The position numbers and the translations under genes were made by a program. The notes below the pieces were generated by a model. That model saw only the letters and a program-made list of their open reading frames with translations, had not been told where the DNA came from and searched no databases. Shown in pieces: positions 29,001 to 61,757 of a stretch of 64,000 nucleotides of DNA; position 1 is the stretch's first letter, and each line of letters starts with the position of its first letter. Origin of the DNA: Vitrella brassicaformis CCMP3155 (lineage: Eukaryota; Protista; Chromerida); assembly GCA_001179505.1 (NCBI GenBank), contig CDMY01000388.1, forward strand, positions 1-64,000. Direction: 5' to 3'.

Positions 29001-32000
29001 ATGGATGAAGGCAGCGACTCAAGCAAGCAGTCGCCCAACGACACTACAGAGAAGAGCAGCAGCGCCTCCTCTGTCCACCCTTCGCTCAACTTGCCTCAGA
29101 ACGGCTCTCACATCGATCCCAAGGCTCAGCCGATGAGTGATCTGCCGCTCGACGCTCAGGGCGAAGCAGCAGCGTCTGCCGGCTCAGCAGAGGACAGCAG
29201 TGGCCAGCAGGGCGCGGCAGACGCCAAGCAGGATGATGCGATGGAGAGGCTGGCGGCGTATCTGCTGAGCATCGCAAAAGACTCACCCGAACACAAGCAG
29301 CAGCGACCGGAGCAGCCCAACCCCTCCCCCCTCTCAGCCAAAGACGACACAGACACCGCAGGCGAGCCCTCCCCACTGACCGTCGCTTCACAGCAGCAGA
29401 ACCAGGCGGGCGGCACTGCGGGCGGGGCGGCTGAGGGTGCCGGTGAGGGTGGTGAGGGCGGTGGCGGTGAGCAGCAGGAGAGTGGTGATGGTGACGGGAG
29501 TGGGGATAAAAAGGACGGCAGTGGTCAGGAGGGCGGGGCGGGAGGTCAGGAGGACGATGAGGAAGACGAAGACAAGCACCCGTCCCCCAACGGACCACAA
29601 GAAGAAGCGGTGAGTGAGTGAGTGAGTGAGTGGTGGGTCGGTTGCACGAACTGGATGCGTCTCTCTGTCTGTCTGTCTGTGTGTGTGTGTGTGTTCAGGG
29701 CTGTCTTCTGCTGCAGGTTGGGTATGGCCGCCTCAGCTCGCTGCGCCTGCCGTTTCGTGTCGGTGTTGGCAAGGAGTACGAGGTGCAGTCCATGATACAA
29801 GTTCACAACCATACGGCACAGGCCACTGGTGAGTGAGCAAACAGCGGCGACCAACACGAGCACAAACCGTCACAAACCTGTTCGTTGTATCGTGTGTGTC
29901 CTTCAGTCGTGTCGTGGGAAGACGGCAAGAAGCTCATCTGCCAGATGGTACACCGCCCATCCATCCATCCATCCATCAACACATTGTTTGTCTTGTCGTC
30001 GGTTTCAGGCGCGACCCTTCGACGTGCCGTCGCTGCTCTCCGATGTGAAGAAGAACCTGCCGTGGACCAAGGGGGGAGGTGACAAAGAGCCCAACAAGTC
30101 CACCAAAGAGCCCAACAAGCCCACCAAGACCCTCCGTCATCATCTGGCTGAGGCGCTAGGGTACAAGTTCAAGTTCGACATCGGTGCTGACGCCATTGTA
30201 GCTGACACTGGTGGTGGTGGTGATCGTGAGGGGCAACGCGAGCGTGTCTGAGGACCAGAAGGCCGGTGGTGACAACGACACGGGCGGCAGCAGTGCCAGC
30301 AGTGGGGATGAGGGCAAAGGAGGGACGGGCGCGTCTTCGTCGGCGGGGTCGGGTGGCGACTCGCCCTTGTCGTCAGACAGCCCACCGCCTCCCCCTCCCC
30401 CGCCCCCGCCACCGCCAGCAGGAGTACGGCCCCAAGACCTTGTTCGATGCGCTGGAGTCCCATCAGTTCGGTAGCCTCGCCCGCCAGCAGTTCGTGTACC
30501 AATACCTCAACGGTCAGCAGTACACACACCTCATCCATCCATCCATCCATCCATCCCTCCATCTCTCCCTTTCTCAGCCTCTGCCAAGCTCAAGATCTGC
30601 CCCGAGCCGGTGTACCACGAGCGCGTCGTCGACCTGCAGCAGGCCAACTTTGGTCGTGCTGACGTGGACTTCTTCATCAATGAGCGGCTGGACTGCGATC
30701 TGGATGCGGTCATGCGGTATGCCGAGAGGTGGGAGCAGGCGCAGAGTGAGCACCTGGAGCGGTCACGGCCCACACGGGGGGGCCGCGACAAACTGGCGCA
30801 CAAGAGACTTGCTCTGGAGCTAATGATAGAAGCGGTAAGGAAGATAGAGTGCACACGTGTCATGGATGTGGTCTATGAATGCAGTCCTGCCTGCCTGCCT
30901 GTGCAGGTCAGGTCCTTCCGTGAGCTTCACTCGCACGGACTCGTCCACGAACACGTCAAACCTAGAGTACGCACGCAGACAACATTACACACACACACAC
31001 CCCAACCAACCAACCACGCAACTCTCCTCCCTCCATGTGTTCAGAATATGATGGTCAAGTACGGCCACGGCAAGCGTGTGTATCTGGTGGACCTCAAGCA
31101 GTGCCGCCCCGTCCGCGCCAAGCCGACCGACGACGAGGAGACACTCAACAGCCTGCGCCGAGGATGCCCAGCGCACACCCTCGACTTCATGCCCATCGGC
31201 ACACACGACTGCCACCTCTCCCCACCGGCATTCAAGTGAGTGAGAGTGGGTGGCCGACAGACTGATGCGTCCATCCTCCACAACACTCACTGGCTCGAAG
31301 GTGCATCGTTTCTGTCTGTCTGTCTGTCTGGATGTGTGCTGTGTGCCTTGCAGGGATGACCTGGAGGGTCTGGCGTATGTTCTCTTGTGGTTGAAGGGCC
31401 CCCTGCCGTGGATGACCAAGCAGCTGCACAAGCACGGCATCCCGAGGCCCTGGCTGACGACTCCCACGAGTCAGCGCAACGAAATCTGTCAGTGGAAGGA
31501 GGAGATGGACGTAGAGGAGGCGTGTGCCGGGCTGCCCGGTAGGGAGAGAGATCGGTGAAGACAGGTGGACGTAGCTCATTGGTCTCTCTCTCTCTCTCTG
31601 TGTTCGTGTCTGTGTGTGGGCAGGTGCTGTGTGTGAGTTTGTGAGGGAGGTGCGGAGCTACGGCCAGTTTGATCTGCCGCGATACGACCACCTCATAGAG
31701 TTGCTACGAACAGCCATCGACCAGTGAGTGAGAGAAGACCACACTGAGGATGGATGGATGGATGGATGTGCCAATGTCATGTTCCCTCTTGCGTCGTGTG
31801 TGTGTCAGATTGCCTGCATCTGAGCATGTGCGTCGGCTGCCCTTCTTGGATGAGGCCCTCACGCCCCCCGGCTGCCGCATCGCACGACACTTCACCGACC
31901 AACACAACCTCACACGACTCAAGAAGCTCGCCACCCTGCCGTCCTCCGCCACCGGCACCCGCAGCGGCACCAGCACCACAGCTACGCCACCCCTCCCCTC

Positions 32001-34348
32001 ACCCACCGAGACCGAGGCATCGCCAGCACACGAGCCAGCTCCTCCCAGCCTCTCGGCCGCCGAACGTGCACGGAGTCTGGCGTGTCTGCAGTCACCGGAC
32101 GCGAGTCGGTTTGCTGCCCTCGTGACACCGAGCGAGATCACGCTTCTCGGCGAGTTCATGCTGTGGGCGACTCAGCCGGACGGCAAGTGGTACCGGCTGA
32201 TCAAGAGGGTGGGCGAGAGGGGCGGCGAGGGCGCGTCGGCGTCTGTCCCCGTGACGCTGGCGGGTCTGCCGGAGAACTGTCTGTGTCGTGTGACGGACTT
32301 CATGACGACCCTCGAGATCATTGGCCGTGTGGGCCTGTGGGCAACTGCCTTCCGCTCCCTCGCCATCAGGCCGGAGTTCCACACGCGGCTGACCATCGCC
32401 GGCGAGCCGCAATGGCACCGATTCGACCTCACCGTGTCGAGCCTGTGGGCGCCGCGCATGACACTCATCTCGACGGCCGACATCAAACCCCCCCTACCAC
32501 TCGTCCCCGACAAGACGGAGATGCTGGTGGTGACGGCACGTACCAGCAAGCAAGTCGGCGACCCCCAAGTGCGGTTCGACTTCCGCCCAGGCAGTGCTCG
32601 CGCGGTGTCGCACATGAGCCCCTCGCCGCCCTTTGACAGTGTCAATGACAGCGCCATGACGCTGCCCTTCGCCTACCCCCTCTCGTCGATTCTCACTGGC
32701 GCCATCCGGCCCCCATTCATCCCGCCCACCCTCCCGGCCGTCAAGTACTACCCCAAGCCGGCGTCATCCTCGGCCAAGGGCCCCTCCCTGGCCAGCAGCA
32801 GTGGCCAGCAGGAGGGAGAGGTGAGCAGCCGCGAGATGTACCCTGACGTGGCGGCGTATCTGCTGAAGAAGCATCCCAAGGCCGACCCCACAACCAAGCA
32901 GCAGCGACCGGAGCAGCCCAGCCCCTCCCCCCTCTCAGCCAAAGACGACACAGACACCGCAGGCAAGCCCTCCCCACTCACCGTCGCTTCACAGCAGCAG
33001 AACCAGGCGGGCGGCACTGCGGGCGGGGCGGCTGAGGGTGGTGGTGAGGGTGAGGGCGTTGGTGGCGGTTGTGATGAGCAGCAGCAGGGGCGCCGTGTGG
33101 CCAAGAGCCCCCTTCTGCGCAAGTTCGAGACCACCGGCAGCGTCCGCACCATCCTGCACCCGCGCGAGCCGCACCTCAAGCCGTTCGCCATCAACGGGGT
33201 GGTGGGTGTGCTGGAGGCATCGCACGCGACGTTGGCCGAGCTGCGTGTGCGTGACGGGAGGGTGGACCTGCCGGAGGTGCCAGCGGCCTACGGCTTCAAG
33301 CCGCCCCGTCCGTGTGGCGTCGATCGGTCCGGTGACGCTATGCTGGAGTTCCCGAAGCTGACGACTGTGGTGATGCCATCGGACAAGGCCAACATCAACG
33401 GATTCACCAAGGTGAGGGACAGACAGAGGCACACACTGGCGGCCCATTCACGTGTGTGTCCCTCTGTGTGTGTGTGGTGGGTGGGCAGGTAGCCTATGTG
33501 TGTCGGTGGTCTCTGCCGAATCTGACGTCTCTGACGGTGTCGGGCGACTGCCGCGAGCATGCGGCCAGCAGATCGCCAGACGACCCTAGCTTCTGGCGCA
33601 GCCAACTCCGCTCCTGGAGGGCTCTCGCCAGCTCAGACAGCCCCTTCAGACACCACACACAAGTGCCGTACGACGAGGCCACGCGCATACTCGAGCACGC
33701 AGGGGCCGAGCGTCAGAACAGAGACAACCATCGGTAAGACCACACACGCACACACGAGATGAGGCTGGCTGCCGGTCGGATGGCATGGCCCATGTGTCTG
33801 TCTGTGTGATGTGTGTGTGTGTGTCTGTGTCAGTGGGGAGATCCTGGGAGTGTACATTGGTGTGTGGATGATGAAGGCTGAGAACATCGATACCATCAAG
33901 GTGACCGGCATGCCGGTAAGTAAGACAAGACAGCCGAGCCGAGCTGAGCTGACAAGACACCACCGACAGACACCGCCATGCACACGCTCCCCTCTCTTTG
34001 CCCTCCGCTCATCCCTGCCAGGTTGACGTGTTGACGACCGCGCTTTCGCTGCGCGCCAGGCTGCCCCAGCTGCGCCGCCTGATCGACGCCATCAGCCCCG
34101 CGGCCACCCAACAGACCCTCATCCAACTCAAGACCCTCCTGCAGCAGAAGGGCGCGCCACTGGCCGACAAGATCGTGGTGCCGCTGACAGACGACGACAG
34201 GGACCACGACAGTGACAACGAGGGTGAGGAGGAGGGCGAGGAGGACAACGGTGGTGGTGGTGGTGGTGCAGACGGCGGGGAGGGCCAGCAGCGCAGCAAG
34301 ACGAAGCGCAAGGTCATCCCGTATGTCGACCACTGCATGACCCAGTAG
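29001..34348 (+). CDS. CK1-like pseudokinase fused to F-box and LRR-like module, copy A (complete)
   Basis: Kinase-fold exons (FINERLDCDL, LHSHGLVHEHVKPR|NMM, VYLVDLKQ, DDLEGLAYVLLWLKGPLPW, PRYDHLIELL) are joined by a phase-2 intron (31724-31808) to QLPASEHV. F-box-like LAGLPENCLCRVTDFMTTLEI..FRSLA and LRR-like FPKLTTVV / LPNLTSLTV follow. Confidence 0.8.
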
Positions 34349-35234
34349 ACAACACAAGATACCGACCAACTAAGCAGGAGGGTGAGGAGGGACGGGGGGA
34401 GGGAGGGCGGGAGGGAGGGAGGAAGAGGCCACAGAGGCCGTGGATGTGTTGTGTTGTGTTGTGTTGTGTGTGCAGGTGGGGTGGCAGGATGGGATGGACG
34501 ACGACAGGACGACAGGACGACACACAGGACCACTGGTCTGTCTGGCTGGCTGGCTGGCTGACTGACTGCATCACGACTACTGACTGACTGACGGCATGGA
34601 TGCATCACATGTGTGTATCTGTAAGTACCGACGTGTGGATAGCATACACAGACAGACAGACTGACCGACGGATGGATGGATGGATGGTCGACTCGATCTA
34701 TATGTTGCTTGTCTGTCGGACGCTCTGTACCGTACGGCGCGCTGATTCGCCTTAATACTTACACAAGGACTGCCTCCATCTTTATTGTCCATTCTGTCCG
34801 TCATCGCACACACACACGCACACACACACACACACACGGACAGAAACCGTTCAATAAACCATGGCATCTGTCTGGTTAAGCAGCAGTATACATGAGCTCT
34901 CACGTCAGTGTGACTCCTGCAAGCCATCCCATCCCTCTAGCTATCACTGGTCGGCTGGCTGGCTGGCTGGCCGGCAAAGCCACGCTCAATCAGCATGCGC
35001 ACAGCACAGCACAGCCCAGCCTAGGTACGAAAAACCACAACGCACGAACCACACGAATGCTCAAATGCAGGCCCCCCCTCCCCCCCCCACACACACACGA
35101 GGTAAAACAAAACCTCTGTGCTGTCTGTCTGTCTGTCTGTCTGTTTCCCCACCCAATCACACCCACACCACACAGAGACAGACAACAACACCGCCTTCCT
35201 TCCTTTCCCCCTCTCCCCTACTAAGTGACCCAAC

Positions 35235-54573: not shown

Positions 54574-56909
54574 TTAAGGGTTGTGGCAGCGATCCGCATA
54601 CTCCCGCCTCTGTCCGCTGCCCTCACCCTCACCGCCGTCATCCCCACTGCTGCCGTCGGACGTCGGCGCCGCCATCAGATCGGCCAGCGGTGCTCCCTTC
54701 TTGTGCAGGAGTGCCCTGAGCTGGCGGAGTGTCTGGTCGGTGGCATCTGGGCCGCTGGTGTCGGCGAGGCGGTTGAGGTGGGGCAGCCCGCCGTCGGGGG
54801 CGATGGAGAGGGCGGCCTTCAACACGTGAACCTGTCAAGAGAGGACAGCAGAGGGAGGGAATGGATGGACTCTGTGTGGTGTCTTCCCTCACCCACCGGC
54901 ATGTCGGTGGCCTCAACCGATTCGATCTTGTCGGTGTTGTTCAGCCAGGCGCCCACATACACACCCAATGTCTCACCGCTGACAGACAGACAGAACACAG
55001 ATCGGTGTGGCTGTCTGAAATGGGTCTCTGTGCGTACCGAAACTTCTCCCTGTTGATGTGTTCGGATGTGCTGCTTTCGAGTATGCGAGTGGCGTCCTCG
55101 TGGGCCACATCGGTGTGGTGGCCACCGGCGAAGTGGGCGCTGGTCGTCACGCTGCGGCTCAGATGAGGGCGGCAGCCGCCCGTCACCGTCAGAGACGTCA
55201 GATTCGGCAGAGACCACCGACACACATAGGCCACCTGCCCACCCACCACACACACAGGGGGACACACATGACCGGTCGGTCTCATTCTGTCTGTCTGTCC
55301 CTGACCTTAGTGAATCCGCTGAGGTTGGCCTTGTCCGATGGCACCACCACAGTCGTCAGCTTCGGGAACTCCAGCATAGCGTTGCCAGACCGATCGACGC
55401 CAGGTGGGCGGGGCGGCTTGAAGCCGTAGGCCGCTGGCACCTCCGGCAGGTCCACCCGCCCCTCACGCACACGCAGCTCCGCCAACGTCGAGTGCGATGC
55501 CTCAGCACACCCACCACACCGTTGATGGCGAATCGCCGGAGGGAGGGGCTGCGGGGGTGCAGGACGGTGCGTGTGCCGCCGGTGATGTGGGCCTTGTGCA
55601 GCAGGGGGCTCTTGGCCGAGAATATGGAGGGCGGGTCGGCGTAGTGCTTCACGGCCGGGAGGGTGGGCGGGATGAGTGGTGGCCGGATGGCGCCAGTGAG
55701 AATCGACGAGAGGGGGTAGGCGAAGGGCAGCGTCATGGCGCTGTCGTTGACGCTGTCAAAGGGCGGCGAGGGGCTCATGGACGAGTCGATCCCACGCACA
55801 GCGCCCCCGCGCCCCCGCTGCTTCTGCACAATTATGCGGGCCTTGTCGGGGAGGCTTGGGAGGGGGGGCCTGATGTCGGCCGTCGAGATGAGTGTCATGC
55901 GCGGCGCCCACAGGCTCGACACGGCGAGGTCGAATCGGTGCCATTGCGGCTCGCCGGCGATGGTCAGCCGCGTGTGGAACTCGGGCCTGATGGCGAGGGA
56001 GCGGAAGGCGGAGGCCCACAGGCCCACACTGCCGATGATCTCGAGGGTCGTCATGAAGTCCGTCACGCAGCACAGACAGTTCTCCGGCATTGTCGACAGC
56101 GTCACAGCGGGTGGCTCGCCGCCCCCCTGGTCGCCCTTGGCGGCCCTCTTGATGAGCCGATAGGCAGGCGGCTGTGTGGCCCACAGCAGGAACTCGCCAA
56201 CCATCGTCATCTCGCTAGACAGCCACACACGGCGCTGCCGGGGGTCCATCAGCGCACCAAGACAGAGCTCGTCCAGCGACGGCTGTGTGGCCAGGGCCCC
56301 AGCCATGGTGCCCCCACAGGGACCTCTCAGACTCTCGGCAGCCGATCCCGGAGGCTGGGAGGTCATGGCCCGCCCCAAGGCGCCCAAGGCAAGAAGGCCC
56401 ATGCCCCTCAGACGCTCCGTGACGCCATGCATGCGTCGGTTGGCCACAGGTGGGGGCGACGGTGGCGTGTGTGGTGGGAGGGGCGGTGTGGGGGGCGGGG
56501 GAGTGAGGTCGGTCTCTGTGAAGGCGCCGGGGGGGCTGGCGAGTTTCTTGAGTCGTGTGAGGTTGTGTTGGTCTGTGAAGTGCCGGGCGATGCGGCAGGC
56601 GGGGGGCGTGAGGGCCTCATCCAAGAAGGGCAGCCGACGCACATGCTCGGAGGCTGGCAACCTGACACACACCACAGGAGACGGAACAAGACATTGGCAC
56701 ATCCATCCATCCCTCCGTCCACCCTACTGAGTGTGCTCACTGGTCGATGGCTGTTCGCAGCAAGTCGATCAGGTGGTCGTATCGCGGCAGCTGCAGCCTG
56801 CCGTAGCCCAGCACCTCCTTGACAAACTCACACACACCACCTGACCACACAGAGATACCAGTGAGTTGCTTGGGTCTGCTTGTGTCGCCTCCCTCCCTCC
56901 GATTGCCTA
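54574..56909 (-). CDS. Pseudokinase-F-box/LRR family, copy C (last kinase exon plus full F-box/LRR part; 5' part lost in gap)
   Basis: VCEFVKEVLGYGRLQLPRYDHLIDLLRTAID|QLPASEHVRRLPF..LSTMPENCLCCVTDFMTTLE..EFPKLTTVV|VAYVCRWSLPNLTSLTV..KKGAPLADL..*. Confidence 0.75.
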
Positions 56910-57209
56910 NNNNNNNNNNNNNNNNNNNNNNNNNNNNNNNNNNNNNNNNNNNNNNNNNNNNNNNNNNNNNNNNNNNNNNNNNNNNNNNNNNNNNNNNNNN
57001 NNNNNNNNNNNNNNNNNNNNNNNNNNNNNNNNNNNNNNNNNNNNNNNNNNNNNNNNNNNNNNNNNNNNNNNNNNNNNNNNNNNNNNNNNNNNNNNNNNNN
57101 NNNNNNNNNNNNNNNNNNNNNNNNNNNNNNNNNNNNNNNNNNNNNNNNNNNNNNNNNNNNNNNNNNNNNNNNNNNNNNNNNNNNNNNNNNNNNNNNNNNN
57201 NNNNNNNNN

Positions 57210-60200
57210 CGATGAATGGGGGCCGGATGGCGCCAGTGAGAATCGACGAGAGGGGGTAGGCGAAGGGCAGCGTCATGGCGCTGTCGTTGACACTGTCAAA
57301 GGGCGGCGAGGGGCTCATGGACGAGCTCATCTCACGCACAGCGCCCCCGCCCACCGGCTGCTTCTGCACGATTATGCGGGCCTTGTCGGGCTGGCGGGGT
57401 AGGGGGGGCGTGATGTCGGCCGTCGCAATGAGTGTCATTCGCGGCGCCCACAGGCTCGACACGGCGAGGTCGAATCGGTGCCATTGCGGCTCGCCGGCGA
57501 TGGTCAGCCGCGTGTGGAACTCGGGCCTGATGGCGAGGGAGCGGAAGGCGGAGGCCCACAGGCCCACACTGCCGATGATCTCGAGGGTCGTCATGAAGTC
57601 CGTCACGCAGCACAGACAGTTCTCCGGCATTGTCGACAGCGTCACAGCGGGTGGCTCGCCGCCCCCCTGGTCGCCCTTGGCGGCCCTCTTGATGAGCCGA
57701 TAGGCAGGCGGCTGTGTGGCCCACAGCAGGAACTCGCCAACCATCGTCATCTCGCTAGACAGCCACACACGGCGCTGCCGGGGGTCCATCAGCGCACCAA
57801 GACAGAGCTCGTCCAGCGACGGCTGTGTGGCCAGGGCCCCAGCCAAGGTGCCCCCACAGGGACCTATCAGACCCCCGGCAGCCGAGCCCAGAGACTGGGA
57901 GGTCATGGCCCGCCCCAGGGCGGCCAGGGCGACGAGGCCCATGCCCCTCAGGCGCTTCGTGACGCCTTGCATGCGTCGCTTGGCCACAGGTGGGGGCGAC
58001 GGGGGCGTGTGTGGTGGGAGGGGCGGTGTGGGGGGCGGGGGTGTGAGGTCGGTCTCGGCGAAGGCGCCGGGGGGGCTGGTGAGCTTCTCGAGTCGCCTGA
58101 GGTTGTGTTGGTCTGTGAAGTGCCGTGCGATGCGGCAGCCGGGGGGCGTGAGGGCCTCATCCAAGAAGGGCAGCCGACGCAAATGCTCGGAGGCTGGCAA
58201 CCTGACACACCACAGGAGAAGCAACACACGATTGGCACATCCATCCATCCGTCCGTCCACCCCACTGGGTGTGCTCACTGGTCGATGGCTGTTCGCAGCA
58301 AGTCCATCAGGTGGTCGTATCGCGGCACCTGCAGCCTCCCGTAGCCCAGCACCTCCTTCACAAACTCACACACACCACCTGACCACACACAGAGACCGAT
58401 GAGCTGATTTGGTCTGCTTTGCTGCCTCTCATCCTCCGATTGCCTACCAGGGAGTCCCTCGCAGGCTTCGTCTATATTGGTGTATCTCTTGGCGTCGGCC
58501 AGTGTGTTGGAGTCGGCCTGACTCATGTTGAGGACTGGCGTGGGCAGTGCTGGATTGCGCATCCACGGAAGGCTGCCACTCAACTGCCAGACCAAAGAGT
58601 AGCAGAGCCCCTCCAGATCGTCCCTGCACGCCGTACATCGACTCACGTGTACTGGATATCTCTGTCGTCCCCCNNNNNNNNNNNNNNNNNNNNNNNNNNN
58701 NNNNNNNNNNNNNNNNNNNNNNNNNNNNNNNNNNNNNNNNNNNNNNNNNNNNNNNNNNNNNNNNNNNNNNNNNNNNNNNNNNNNNNNNNNNNNNNNNNNN
58801 NNNNNNNNNNNNNNNNNNNNNNNNNNNNNNNNNNNNNNNNNNNNNNNNNNNNNNNNNNNNNNNNNNNNNNNNNNNNNNNNNNNNNNNNNNNNNNNNNNNN
58901 NNNNNNNNNNNNNNNNNNNNNNNNNNNNNNNNNNNNNNNNNNNNNNNNNNNNNNNNNNNNNNNNNNNNNNNNNCCCCCCCCCCAAATCAGTCACTCACTT
59001 GAAAGCCGGTGGCTCGCATGTGTGCATTGCGATGGGTGCGAGGGCAAAGGAGTGCACGAAGCACCCTCGCCGCTTGTGGCGGAGTGTCTCCTGGTCGTCG
59101 GTCGGCTTGGCGCGGACAGGTCGGCACTGCTTGAGGTCCACCAGGTACACACGCTTGCCGTGGCCGTACTTCAGCATCATGTTCTGAACACACGGAGGGA
59201 GGGAGGAGAGTTGCGTGGTTGGTGTGTGTGTGTGTGTGTGTCTGTGTGTATTGTCTGCGCGCGTACTCTAGGTTTGACGTGTTCGTGGACGAGTCCGTGG
59301 GAATGGAGCTCCCGCAATGAACGGACCTGCGCCCCGCGGCATAAGAGAGAGGACGTGAGAAGCCGACACACAGCCCTCCCAGCATGTGTGTGTGTGCATA
59401 CCGCTTCGACATAGAGCTCGAGTATCAGCTTGATGGGCTGCCCTGGCATCTGCCCCACCGCCCACTGCCGGGCGTAGCGTACCACGCTCTCCAGGGTGCC
59501 GTCCATCCACTCGTTGACGTAGAAACCCACACGGGTCCTGCCGAGCTCGCCATCCTTCACAAGCCCCTGCTTGACGAACCTGGTCTCCTGATACACCGGC
59601 TCGGGGCAGATCTTGATCTCGGCAGACGCCGCAAGGGGAAGGAATGGATGGATGGATGGATGAATTAGGTTCCTGCTGGCTGTCTGTGTGTGTGTTGGTC
59701 ACCTTTTAGGTACTGGTACACAAAGTTCTGGCGTGCGAGGCTGCCGAAGGGATGACAATCGAGTGCGTCGAAGAGGGTCTTGGGGCCGTACACTTGCGGC
59801 GGCGGCGGTGGGGGAGAGGGAGTAGGGTCCGATGAGGACGGCGATTCGTTGCCCGGCGCTGCAGATGCATCCGTCTCTCCCTTGCCTTCATCTCCACTGC
59901 TGGCACTGCTGCCGCCCTTGTCGTTGTCCCCGCCGGCCTTCTTGTCCTCAGACGCACCGCTGCCGCTGTTGCCCGACCCGTCCATGCCATCCGCGGTCGT
60001 TTGCGCCTTCTTGTCACCTGTCGCACCAACGGCGGACCGGAAGGCCTCGAGACGGTCACGGAAGGAGAGGGCAGCTGCGTCAGGGTCGATGGAGCCGTCC
60101 TCGTGGCGGCCGGGGATGGGTGGAGCGCGTTGCTGAAACGAAAGCAACAGACAGGCCAGGCCACCCATTCAGTGTGTGGATGGATGGATGGGTGCTAGGT

Positions 60201-61368
60201 TACACACGTGTTGGGTACGGTACTCTACCTACCATCTGGCAGATGAGCCTCTTGCCATCCTCCACATCCTCGTCCCACGACAGAACTGAACTCACACACC
60301 AAACGAAGGTGACTGACCATCTATCTCAGGCCAGTCGCCTCCTTACCTGTGCCCTGCAGGGTGAGCCGGTGGGCTGACATCATCGACTGCACCTCATACT
60401 CCTTGCGAGCACCCACACGAAGCGGCAGGCGCAGCAACTTGAGCCGGTTAGACGACACGCCCAGAATGAACACATCCTGACCAGACCACATAGATCACTC
60501 ACACACCACAGATGCACTTCTAGACACACATGTGGGTCGCCTTTCACCTCACCGCTTCCTCTTGCTTCACGGCAGCAGGCCGCCGGTCAGCCTCTTCATC
60601 CTCGTCCTGATCACCACTCCCGTCACCAACCTCCTGCTGCTGCTCATCAGCACCACCCGCACCAGCACCATCACCCGCAGCAGCAGCCCCGCTCAGCGCC
60701 CTCGCTGTGTCCTGGTGTGCAACGCCGCTAGCCTGATCTTGGTGCTGCTGCAGTAAAGCAGCGAGGTCCGGGAACGACTTGGCGCGCCGCAGCAGAGGTG
60801 CCGCGTCGCTGTCCTCGAGCGATGGGTGGCCGGCGAAGGAGCGGCTGCGCTTCATCTGGTGCTTCTTGGGTGGGGCGGCGGCCTCTGGTCCCTTCTGGCT
60901 GCCTTGTGTGCTGTGTATGCGGCGGACGGCCTCCCTCACCAAAGCCACCAACACACGCTCCATCACGCTGCCGCTCGTCTCGACCTTGACCGCCACTCCA
61001 TCGAGCTGCTTAGCACCAGGCTCCCCCTCCTCACCGCTGCTGGCCTCCTCAGTGCTGTGTATGCGGCGGACGGCCTCTCTCACGAGCGTCATCAACACAC
61101 GCTCCATCACACTGCCACTCGCCTCGACCTTGGCGGCATCTCCATCGAGCTGTTTAGCACCAGCCGCCCCCTCCTGACCATCGCTGGCCTCCTCCGTGTT
61201 GTGTGTGCCGTGTATGTGACACACCGCCTCTCTCACGAGCACCTCTAACACACGCTCCACGACGCTGCGAGCCGCCTCTCTATCGAGCTGCTTGGCGTCT
61301 GCCGCATCATGCTCTCCGCTGCTTGCCTTCGCTGCTCCACCCTGAGGTCCTATTGGCGGATCGCTCAT
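57210..61368 (-). CDS. Pseudokinase-F-box family, copy B (pseudokinase complete; F-box exon runs into gap)
   Basis: GARKEYEVQSM, GKRLICQM, FGSLARQNFVYQYL, LHSHGLVHEHVKPR|NMMLKYGHGKRVYLVDLKQ, DDLEGLCYSLVWQLSGSLPW and LLRTAID|QLPASEHL via the same phase-2 intron as copy A. Confidence 0.8.
60904..61310 (-). repeat. Three intragenic ~144-bp repeats encoding AKQLD..SV(M/V)ERVLxxLVREAVxxIH
   Basis: gctgtgtatgcggcggacggcctc occurs at 60910 and 61054, with a diverged third unit at ~61208. The translation shows the 48-aa repeat. Confidence 0.9.
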
Positions 61369-61757
61369 CGGCTGAGCCTTTTCGTCGATAAGGGAGCCGT
61401 TCTGAGGCGACGAGAGCGACTGATGGGCAGGCGGGCGCTGCTGCTTCCCTCCGTTGCGTCGTTGAGTGGCTCTTTGATTGGGCTGTTCTCGTCGTTCATC
61501 TGCCGGCTGGCGATGAGGAGGGCGATGAGTCAGTCGAGACGTGTCGAGACGATTATAGAGTGAACGAGGCAGAATGAGAGAGAAATAGCATCAAGACTAC
61601 CTGTGGGACCTTGCGAAGGAGGAAAAACAATAGAAGCGTAAAGCCGCCTCAACAAAACCGTTTCACGCGACCTACCCCGCAAGCTCGGGCGGGGCAGACG
61701 CTTGTGTGTAGTCACAGGCCTCGAGGTCCATTTCGTCAACAAGCGCCCCCATCAGAA

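Follow-up and report, generated by a model that had tools for sequence, protein, structure and literature searches.

Read without splicing, the forward strand between positions 29001 and 34348 of contig CDMY01000388.1 (hereafter C388) of Vitrella brassicaformis CCMP3155 appears to hold a kinase-like open reading frame (ORF) that stops at a TGA, followed by a second ORF that contains an F-box-like segment. This raises the question of whether the locus comprises two genes or one and, if one, what kind of protein it encodes. The window considered here is the stretch of C388 from position 1 to 64,000, and genome-wide searches covered the whole assembly (72.7 Mb, 1064 contigs). Overall, we consider it likely that 29001-34348 is one multi-exon nuclear gene, a member of a Vitrella-only family of at least six copies whose products combine a probably inactive CK1/VRK-like domain with a divergent F-box-like motif (Table 1). 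A gene model with the junction between the two parts is already public (CEM08872.1, as well as CEM24028.1 and P0153 for paralogues), and the splice itself is not new. What is new is the combination, in proteins whose public names are only “Casein kinase I” (UniRef, for P0003) or “unnamed protein product”, of a CK1-like domain that is probably dead and, after it, an F-box-like motif missed by Pfam.

The following protein sequences are referred to throughout. P0003 (CEM08872.1 / A0A0G4F8K1; 1084 aa) is the public model covering 30308-34348, and P0002, a public NCBI 340-aa “unnamed protein product” from Vitrella brassicaformis CCMP3155, equals the first four exons of the locus. P0152 (CEM24028.1; 1358 aa, contig C576) is a full-length public paralogue, P0153 (1382 aa, contig C746) is a public paralogue model, and P0001 is an RNA-derived ORF taken from an MMETSP transcript of a paralogue. 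Both P0001 and P0002 were recovered by a word search with the long exon, and P0003 by an exhaustive search of 1.84 billion representative sequences (expectation value, E <= 0.001). Single exons were searched one at a time, and whole-protein analyses were run on the public P0003, P0152, and P0153 and on the transcript ORF P0001.

A conserved intron joins the kinase-like exons to a long exon

The window has the composition of GC-rich eukaryotic DNA with short GT..AG introns. Across the three forward frames of 29001-34400, coding blocks each stop a few codons from a GTGAG-type donor and restart past a TG-rich tract and a CAG. When left unspliced, the last kinase-like exon runs through ...AIDQ into a TGA at 31725-31727; this TGA lies within the donor cca/GTGAGT, with 31723 as the last exon base, and the following exon begins at 31809, past the acceptor (TGTGTCAG followed by att). 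Splicing completes a split codon, CA+A for Gln, after which the frame runs on as LPASEH. The base that follows the acceptor is A here but G in the other copies, a synonymous difference as CAA and CAG both encode Gln. The TGA at 31725-31727 is thus the product of a phase-2 GTGAG donor and no sign of a gene end, and a second case of a TGA within a donor occurs in the same gene, at the intron 31236-31353 (TGA 31236-31238).

In an alignment of the junction regions, all six copies of the family (three on C388 and one each on contigs C576, C746, and C189) displayed an identical donor, acceptor, and phase, including the two further copies in the window, whose junctions lie at 58279/58201 (copy 2) and 56741/56661 (copy 3; last and first exon base, minus strand). 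The intron lengths in the six copies (85, 77, 79, 77, 83, and 79 nt) differ by amounts that are not multiples of three, and the 12 gapped alignment columns in the intron compare with none in the flanking exon columns (100 and 120 columns, respectively). Mean pairwise identity across the six copies is 85% for the intron vs 92% and 94% for the flanking exons. The transcript ORF P0001 reads AIDQLPASEH through the junction, as well as through the seven other junctions that it covers, and the same AIDQ/LPASEH junction is carried by the public models P0003, P0152, and P0153. Judged from these sequence comparisons, the intron at 31724-31808 is real and connects the last kinase-like exon with the long one, and spliced RNA of the gene family exists whichever origin P0001 has. 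A first-pass annotation of this DNA, made from the letters alone, had proposed that the kinase-like and F-box ORFs form one spliced gene, that the TGA sits inside a GTGAG donor with the in-frame continuation DQLPASEH, and that the three copies in the window share donor, acceptor, and phase. All three proposals hold, with junction coordinates that agree with ours within 1-2 nt.

Beyond this gene, phase-2 GTGAG donors leave an in-frame TGA after the exon, at which unspliced ORF lists break and adjoining exons come to mimic separate genes. In-frame TGAs of this kind, such as those at 31236-31238 and 31725-31727, represent a general trap in the Vitrella genome.

The kinase-like domain is of CK1/VRK type and probably inactive

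Single exons gave no kinase or F-box hit when scanned against Pfam, and the kinase-like part was instead placed using more sensitive comparisons. A phmmer search against PDB sequences connected residues 26-207 of P0001 to VRK1 and CK1gamma (E 1e-5). The exhaustive search yielded 707 hits and, among the matches listed, all non-family ones cover query residues 10-295, which correspond to the kinase part; the ten best of these non-family hits (E 1e-12 to 1e-9) all pass the Pfam Pkinase model. An alignment with 41 CK1-like kinases displayed the textbook CK1 consensus, from which the family retains the catalytic-loop Lys and Asn, the DDLE.L...LPW block, and the last helices.

A predicted structure was obtained with AlphaFold for residues 255-735 of the paralogue P0152. 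This model is confident (predicted local distance difference test, pLDDT, mostly >85) for its residues 190-480, i.e. from the EYGPK segment to the end, and a Foldseek search with it identified VRK1 and CK1delta (E 1e-12 to 1e-13; template modelling score by target 0.55-0.67), although CK1-like sequences were part of the alignment behind the model, and the fold match thus depends in part on the sequence evidence. Confidence is low for the first 180 residues of the model, which include candidate Gly-loop strands along with a long Gly/Ser/Pro-rich insert. Taken together, sequence comparison and structure prediction support a CK1-group kinase fold (CK1/VRK-like) for this domain.

The residues typically required for catalysis are only partly in place. 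According to the alignment with the 41 CK1-like kinases and an alignment with VRK1, the His-Arg-Asp (HRD) of the catalytic loop is replaced by His-Glu-His (HEH), a change also seen in P0001, P0152, and P0153 that removes the catalytic Asp, and the Asp-Phe-Gly motif reads Asp-Leu-Lys (DLK). The alignment places Gln at the position of the alpha-C Glu and a possible beta-3 Lys in EYGPK, both in a region where the N-lobe alignment and the model are unreliable. Because the catalytic Asp is lost, an inactive kinase is likely based on established kinase enzymology, and the domain is probably a pseudokinase. The suggestion of a CK1-fold pseudokinase in the first-pass annotation is consistent with both the alignments and the structural comparison of the P0152 module.

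A divergent F-box-like motif in the long exon

The best-conserved block within the long exon is the F-box-like motif LAGLPENCLC...HTRLTIA. We compared this motif to the F-box domains of the same genome by building a reference profile from 12 non-redundant Vitrella domains above the Pfam F-box-like cut-off, most of them also above the F-box cut-off, and a query profile from the aligned motif of four family copies. The two profiles were aligned by hhalign over 47 columns, nearly the whole domain, with a score of 35.3 (probability 94%, P 1e-7). The match held without the closest template (probability 90%) and weakened without the two closest (68%). As controls, the reversed motif scored 8.7 and 80 column shuffles scored 9.1 +/- 1.9 (maximum 14.3), while 172 other ORFs of the window (>=120 residues) provided a background of 10.0 +/- 2.1 (maximum 17.3). 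When full-length P0003, P0152, and P0001 were scanned with the profile, the same place was chosen every time.

Two other approaches pointed to the same segment. In a BLASTP comparison, P0001 aligned over 81 residues at 31% identity (E 7e-4) with a C447 contig ORF that passes both Pfam F-box models. A feature search of the ESM-Atlas, which we regard as a lead and not as a test, returned F-box clusters both for residues 345-815 (0.93-0.96) and for the 66-residue motif on its own, where they ranked first (0.92). Skp1 genes were also found in the genome. With the profile–profile score, its controls, the BLASTP match, and the feature search taken together, 32257-32400 is best read as a divergent F-box. 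The LPENCL segment had been described as F-box-like from the letters alone, a description that comparison with the genome’s own Pfam-certified F-box domains bears out.

Alternative explanations

Several results weigh against the reading of an intact gene for a pseudokinase joined to an F-box, and a first group of these concerns the state of the 29001-34348 copy itself. The exon homologous to 30009-30512 is open in a single frame in both C576 and copy 2. Here, the homologous reading starts in frame 1, moves into frame 2 near 30225-30245, and switches again, to frame 3, in a poly-Pro run near 30400-30420. The frame shifts are responsible for the TGA at 30249-30251, and they are also the reason why the locus is publicly annotated as two genes, one for the 340-aa P0002 and one for the 1084-aa P0003. 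An intron from ~30221 to 30419 (exon 4 to exon 5) was considered and rejected, as no donor/acceptor pair fits the phases and the paralogues are coding in one frame there. The long exon also carries an in-frame insertion of ~327 bp that is copied from the first exon of the same gene (its stretch 32849-33087 matches 29251-29480 at 87%) and is absent from all paralogues compared. In addition, this copy is the most divergent member of the family (55-74% protein identity), and no transcript ORF derived from it was found among the MMETSP-derived ORFs searched.

With two frame shifts and a self-derived insertion, the copy may be decaying. In its strongest form, this would mean that the copy is decaying or dead, with its 5' part cut off by the frame shifts, 327 bp of self-insertion, and no full-length protein, and that the paralogues alone are functional, a possibility that we take seriously but find doubtful. 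The nine downstream introns all retain their GT..AG signals, and the frame remains open for 1041 whole codons, whereas only 2 of 2000 simulated runs with 8% random substitution remained stop-free. Synonymous divergence from the paralogues is 0.17-0.34. Neutral drift would be very unlikely to leave such a state at the divergence observed, and the downstream part has thus been kept open by selection or gene conversion. Moreover, both frame shifts fall within low-complexity runs, which are common sites of assembly errors, and the confidently modelled kinase-like part falls wholly within the downstream model P0003. The 5' end of this copy is thus either broken or mis-assembled.

The ratio of nonsynonymous to synonymous substitution (dN/dS) is 0.5-0.7 across most of the long exon, which indicates weak constraint and counts as a further point against our main reading, and it is 0.2-0.44 in the F-box core. 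Based on these ratios, constraint on the sequence is weak but real. Separately, synonymous divergence is itself uneven along the exon, with 0.13-0.19 in the F-box core (within 32257-32500), ~0.30-0.34 in the wider F-box part, and ~0.17 in the distal part. This unevenness may point to gene conversion among the copies, or to constraint that acts at the DNA level.

A second group of results concerns the domain assignments. The Pfam F-box (PF00646) and F-box-like (PF12937) models miss all copies. Even a threshold of E 10 gave no match to exons, whole proteins, or the 66-residue motif, and the genome-wide six-frame hits of these two models include no family locus. When profiles of the C-terminal module and of the motif were compared with the PDB, no F-box or leucine-rich repeat (LRR) protein was identified, and the AlphaFold model of the C-terminal module, obtained from a shallow five-sequence alignment, has a mean pLDDT of 27.6. 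For the kinase-like domain, the Pfam Pkinase model (PF00069) scores 15.0-19.6 bits vs a cut-off of 31.7, and solely around the catalytic loop. These results would fit a lineage-specific pseudokinase scaffold in which the LPENCL segment merely resembles an F-box and does not bind Skp1, the family being unrelated to Skp1–Cullin–F-box (SCF) ubiquitin ligases. The position of the motif in the middle of the protein and not near its N-terminus would also fit such a scaffold, as would the fast evolution of the family (dN/dS 0.5-0.7). We nevertheless judge this explanation unlikely, since the profile–profile score stands far above both the shuffled and the background controls, the BLASTP match to an ORF with a certified F-box in this genome extends over 81 residues, the language-model feature search places F-box clusters first for the motif alone, and the motif is the best-conserved block of its exon. 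A divergent F-box remains our best reading of this segment.

Finally, it is very improbable that the kinase-like ORF ends at 31725-31727, as its unspliced reading does, and that the downstream ORF, with in-frame ATGs at 31750, is an independent F-box gene, given the recurrence of a TGA within the donor of intron 31236-31353, the paralogue transcript ORF that crosses the junction, the indels that are not multiples of three in the intron and lacking in its flanks, and the three public gene models that splice this intron.

Possible function and comparison to known systems

If the kinase-like domain is catalytically dead, it could act as a binding module, while the F-box-like motif would dock the protein on Skp1 and flanking domains would bring in partners. 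The protein would then serve as a substrate receptor of an SCF ubiquitin ligase, or would itself be controlled by SCF at the level of its stability. For a predicted F-box protein such as this one, an SCF adaptor role is something that we can only infer, and the role that the first-pass annotation suggested for the dead kinase, as a phospho-substrate or nucleotide sensor for an SCF ligase, is possible as pure conjecture. The more specific proposal, namely a Vitrella-specific and recently multiplied family of SCF substrate receptors in which the dead CK1-like domain would select or gate substrates from within the same chain, is tentative and in our estimate improbable as it stands.

The family shares with CK1 and VRK kinases the catalytic-loop Lys and Asn, the DDLEGL...LPW block, and the C-terminal PxY...L helix, along with a predicted fold that matches VRK1 and CK1delta. 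Unlike these kinases, it displays HEH, DLK, and an apparent alpha-C Gln, scores below the Pfam Pkinase cut-off, and has an apparently degenerate N-lobe interrupted by a long low-complexity insert; the domain is then followed by a 750-residue extension unseen in CK1 or VRK. Similarly, as in F-box proteins of the FBXO class, the family has a segment of ~47 residues that covers almost the full F-box-like profile, with a long C-terminal region after it, but the Vitrella motif is missed by Pfam and is located behind a kinase-like domain, ~480 (P0003) to 920 residues (full-length paralogue) from the N-terminus.

A precedent for a kinase joined to an F-box is provided by MEKKalpha of Dictyostelium, an active MAP3K with an F-box and WD40 repeats, in which the F-box/WD40 part controls the stability of the protein itself (PMC5666861). 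The Vitrella proteins resemble MEKKalpha in having a protein-kinase-fold domain and an F-box(-like motif) in one polypeptide, but their kinase-like domain is of CK1 type and probably dead, and no recognised repeats follow the motif. Tribbles proteins, which are of CAMK type, recruit the ligase COP1 via a C-terminal peptide. They are described as pseudokinases that function as ubiquitin-ligase adaptors and are tied to protein degradation (PMC8198994). By analogy, a catalytically deficient kinase fold would serve in both cases as a binding module linked to degradation, although in the Vitrella family the link to the ligase would be an F-box in the same chain. The first-pass annotation did not recognise this architecture. 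A kinase combined with an F-box does have a precedent in MEKKalpha. Our literature searches yielded no example in which a probably dead CK1-like domain is paired with an F-box, and no description of the present family.

If the motif binds Skp1, the family would place a pseudokinase directly within an SCF ligase, an arrangement that is rare, and would exemplify rapid invention confined to one lineage among the free-living relatives of apicomplexan parasites. Since this is a one-species family with weak constraint and damaged copies, its wider biological weight is probably modest.

Gene layout and C-terminal region

Nine exon translations (whole codons) were found exactly and in order in P0003, with GT..AG at every junction. 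The tenth exon of P0003, which is its first, was placed by the ATG at 30308 and by the sum of lengths, for a total of 1085 codons including the stop. The 5' part of the locus encodes the low-complexity N-terminus and remnants of the kinase N-lobe, and in the full-length paralogue P0152 this part and the downstream kinase-like part lie within one protein. Overall, the protein runs from a low-complexity N-terminus through the degenerate CK1/VRK-like domain, a linker of ~150 residues, and the F-box-like motif to a final region of ~550 residues. The long exon is 65-74% identical to its counterparts in the paralogues.

Table 1. Features of the 29001-34348 gene and of its two paralogues in the window.
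Feature	Position	Strand	Details and basis
5' part	29001-30251	+	Exons 29001-29609, 29699-29828, 29907-29947, and 30009 to TGA 30249-30251; mapping of P0002
Single exon in paralogues, frame-shifted in the C388 copy	30009-30512	+	Three-frame translation; DNA alignment with C576 and copy 2
Kinase-like exons of P0003	30308-30512, 30578-30834, 30907-30966, 31045-31235, 31354-31538, 31624-31723	+	
His-Glu-His for His-Arg-Asp, catalytic-loop codons	30946-30954	+	Alignment with 41 CK1-like kinases and VRK1 alignment
Asp-Leu-Lys for Asp-Phe-Gly	31090-31098	+	Asp retained, Phe-Gly gone; same alignments
Intron between kinase-like exons and long exon	31724-31808	+	85 nt, GTGAGT...TGTCAG, phase 2
Long exon	31809-33411	+	1603 nt; linker, F-box-like motif, conserved region after the motif, self-derived insertion; P0003 residues 334-867
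F-box-like motif LAGLPENCLC...HTRLTIA	32257-32400	+	hhalign, BLASTP
Last three exons	33489-33733, 33834-33915, 34022-34348 (TAG)	+	C-terminal region; junctions also in transcript ORF P0001
Paralogue copy 2	57208-61480	-	Same junction; interrupted by assembly gaps 58674-58973 and 56910-57209
Paralogue copy 3	54577-56864	-	Visible only from the last kinase-like exon onward; same junction

The LRR-like segments that the first-pass annotation had placed after the F-box-like motif gained no support from any comparison. Neither Pfam scans at E 10 nor the PDB profile search identified an LRR or any other family in the C-terminal half, the family loci were not listed in a genome-wide six-frame search with one LRR family (PF24758, LRR_At5g56370), and LxxLxL-like strings in this half are few and noted by eye only. 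The idea of a repeated fusion family stood within Vitrella, where multiple copies were found, and did not extend further: the C-terminal module had no relative outside Vitrella among the best 150 of the 707 hits of the exhaustive search, and the only two 50%-identity clusters among these 150 that contain the module are both from Vitrella.

Paralogues across the assembly

The copies on C388, all in the window, and those on C576, C746, and C189 were identified through a six-frame search with the start of the long exon. Because assembly gaps cut the tandem copies and others abut contig ends, six copies is a lower bound, and the family is probably collapsed in the assembly. The copies adjoining contig ends are located at C189:1-3036 and C746:1-801.

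The transcript ORF P0001 is a mosaic with respect to these copies. It is 99.7% identical to copy 2 across residues 210-540 and 99% identical to C746 across residues 660-726, its other exons are 97-99% identical to C576 or C746, and its residues 55-117 are just 78% identical to copy 2. P0001 may thus be a chimeric assembly of paralogous transcripts, or may derive from a copy absent from the genome assembly.

Two isolated fragments on contig C688 (149423-149827 and 159557-159661) are ~70% identical to the linker that precedes the motif. With no kinase-like exons detected near them in the searches made, these fragments may represent a relic copy.

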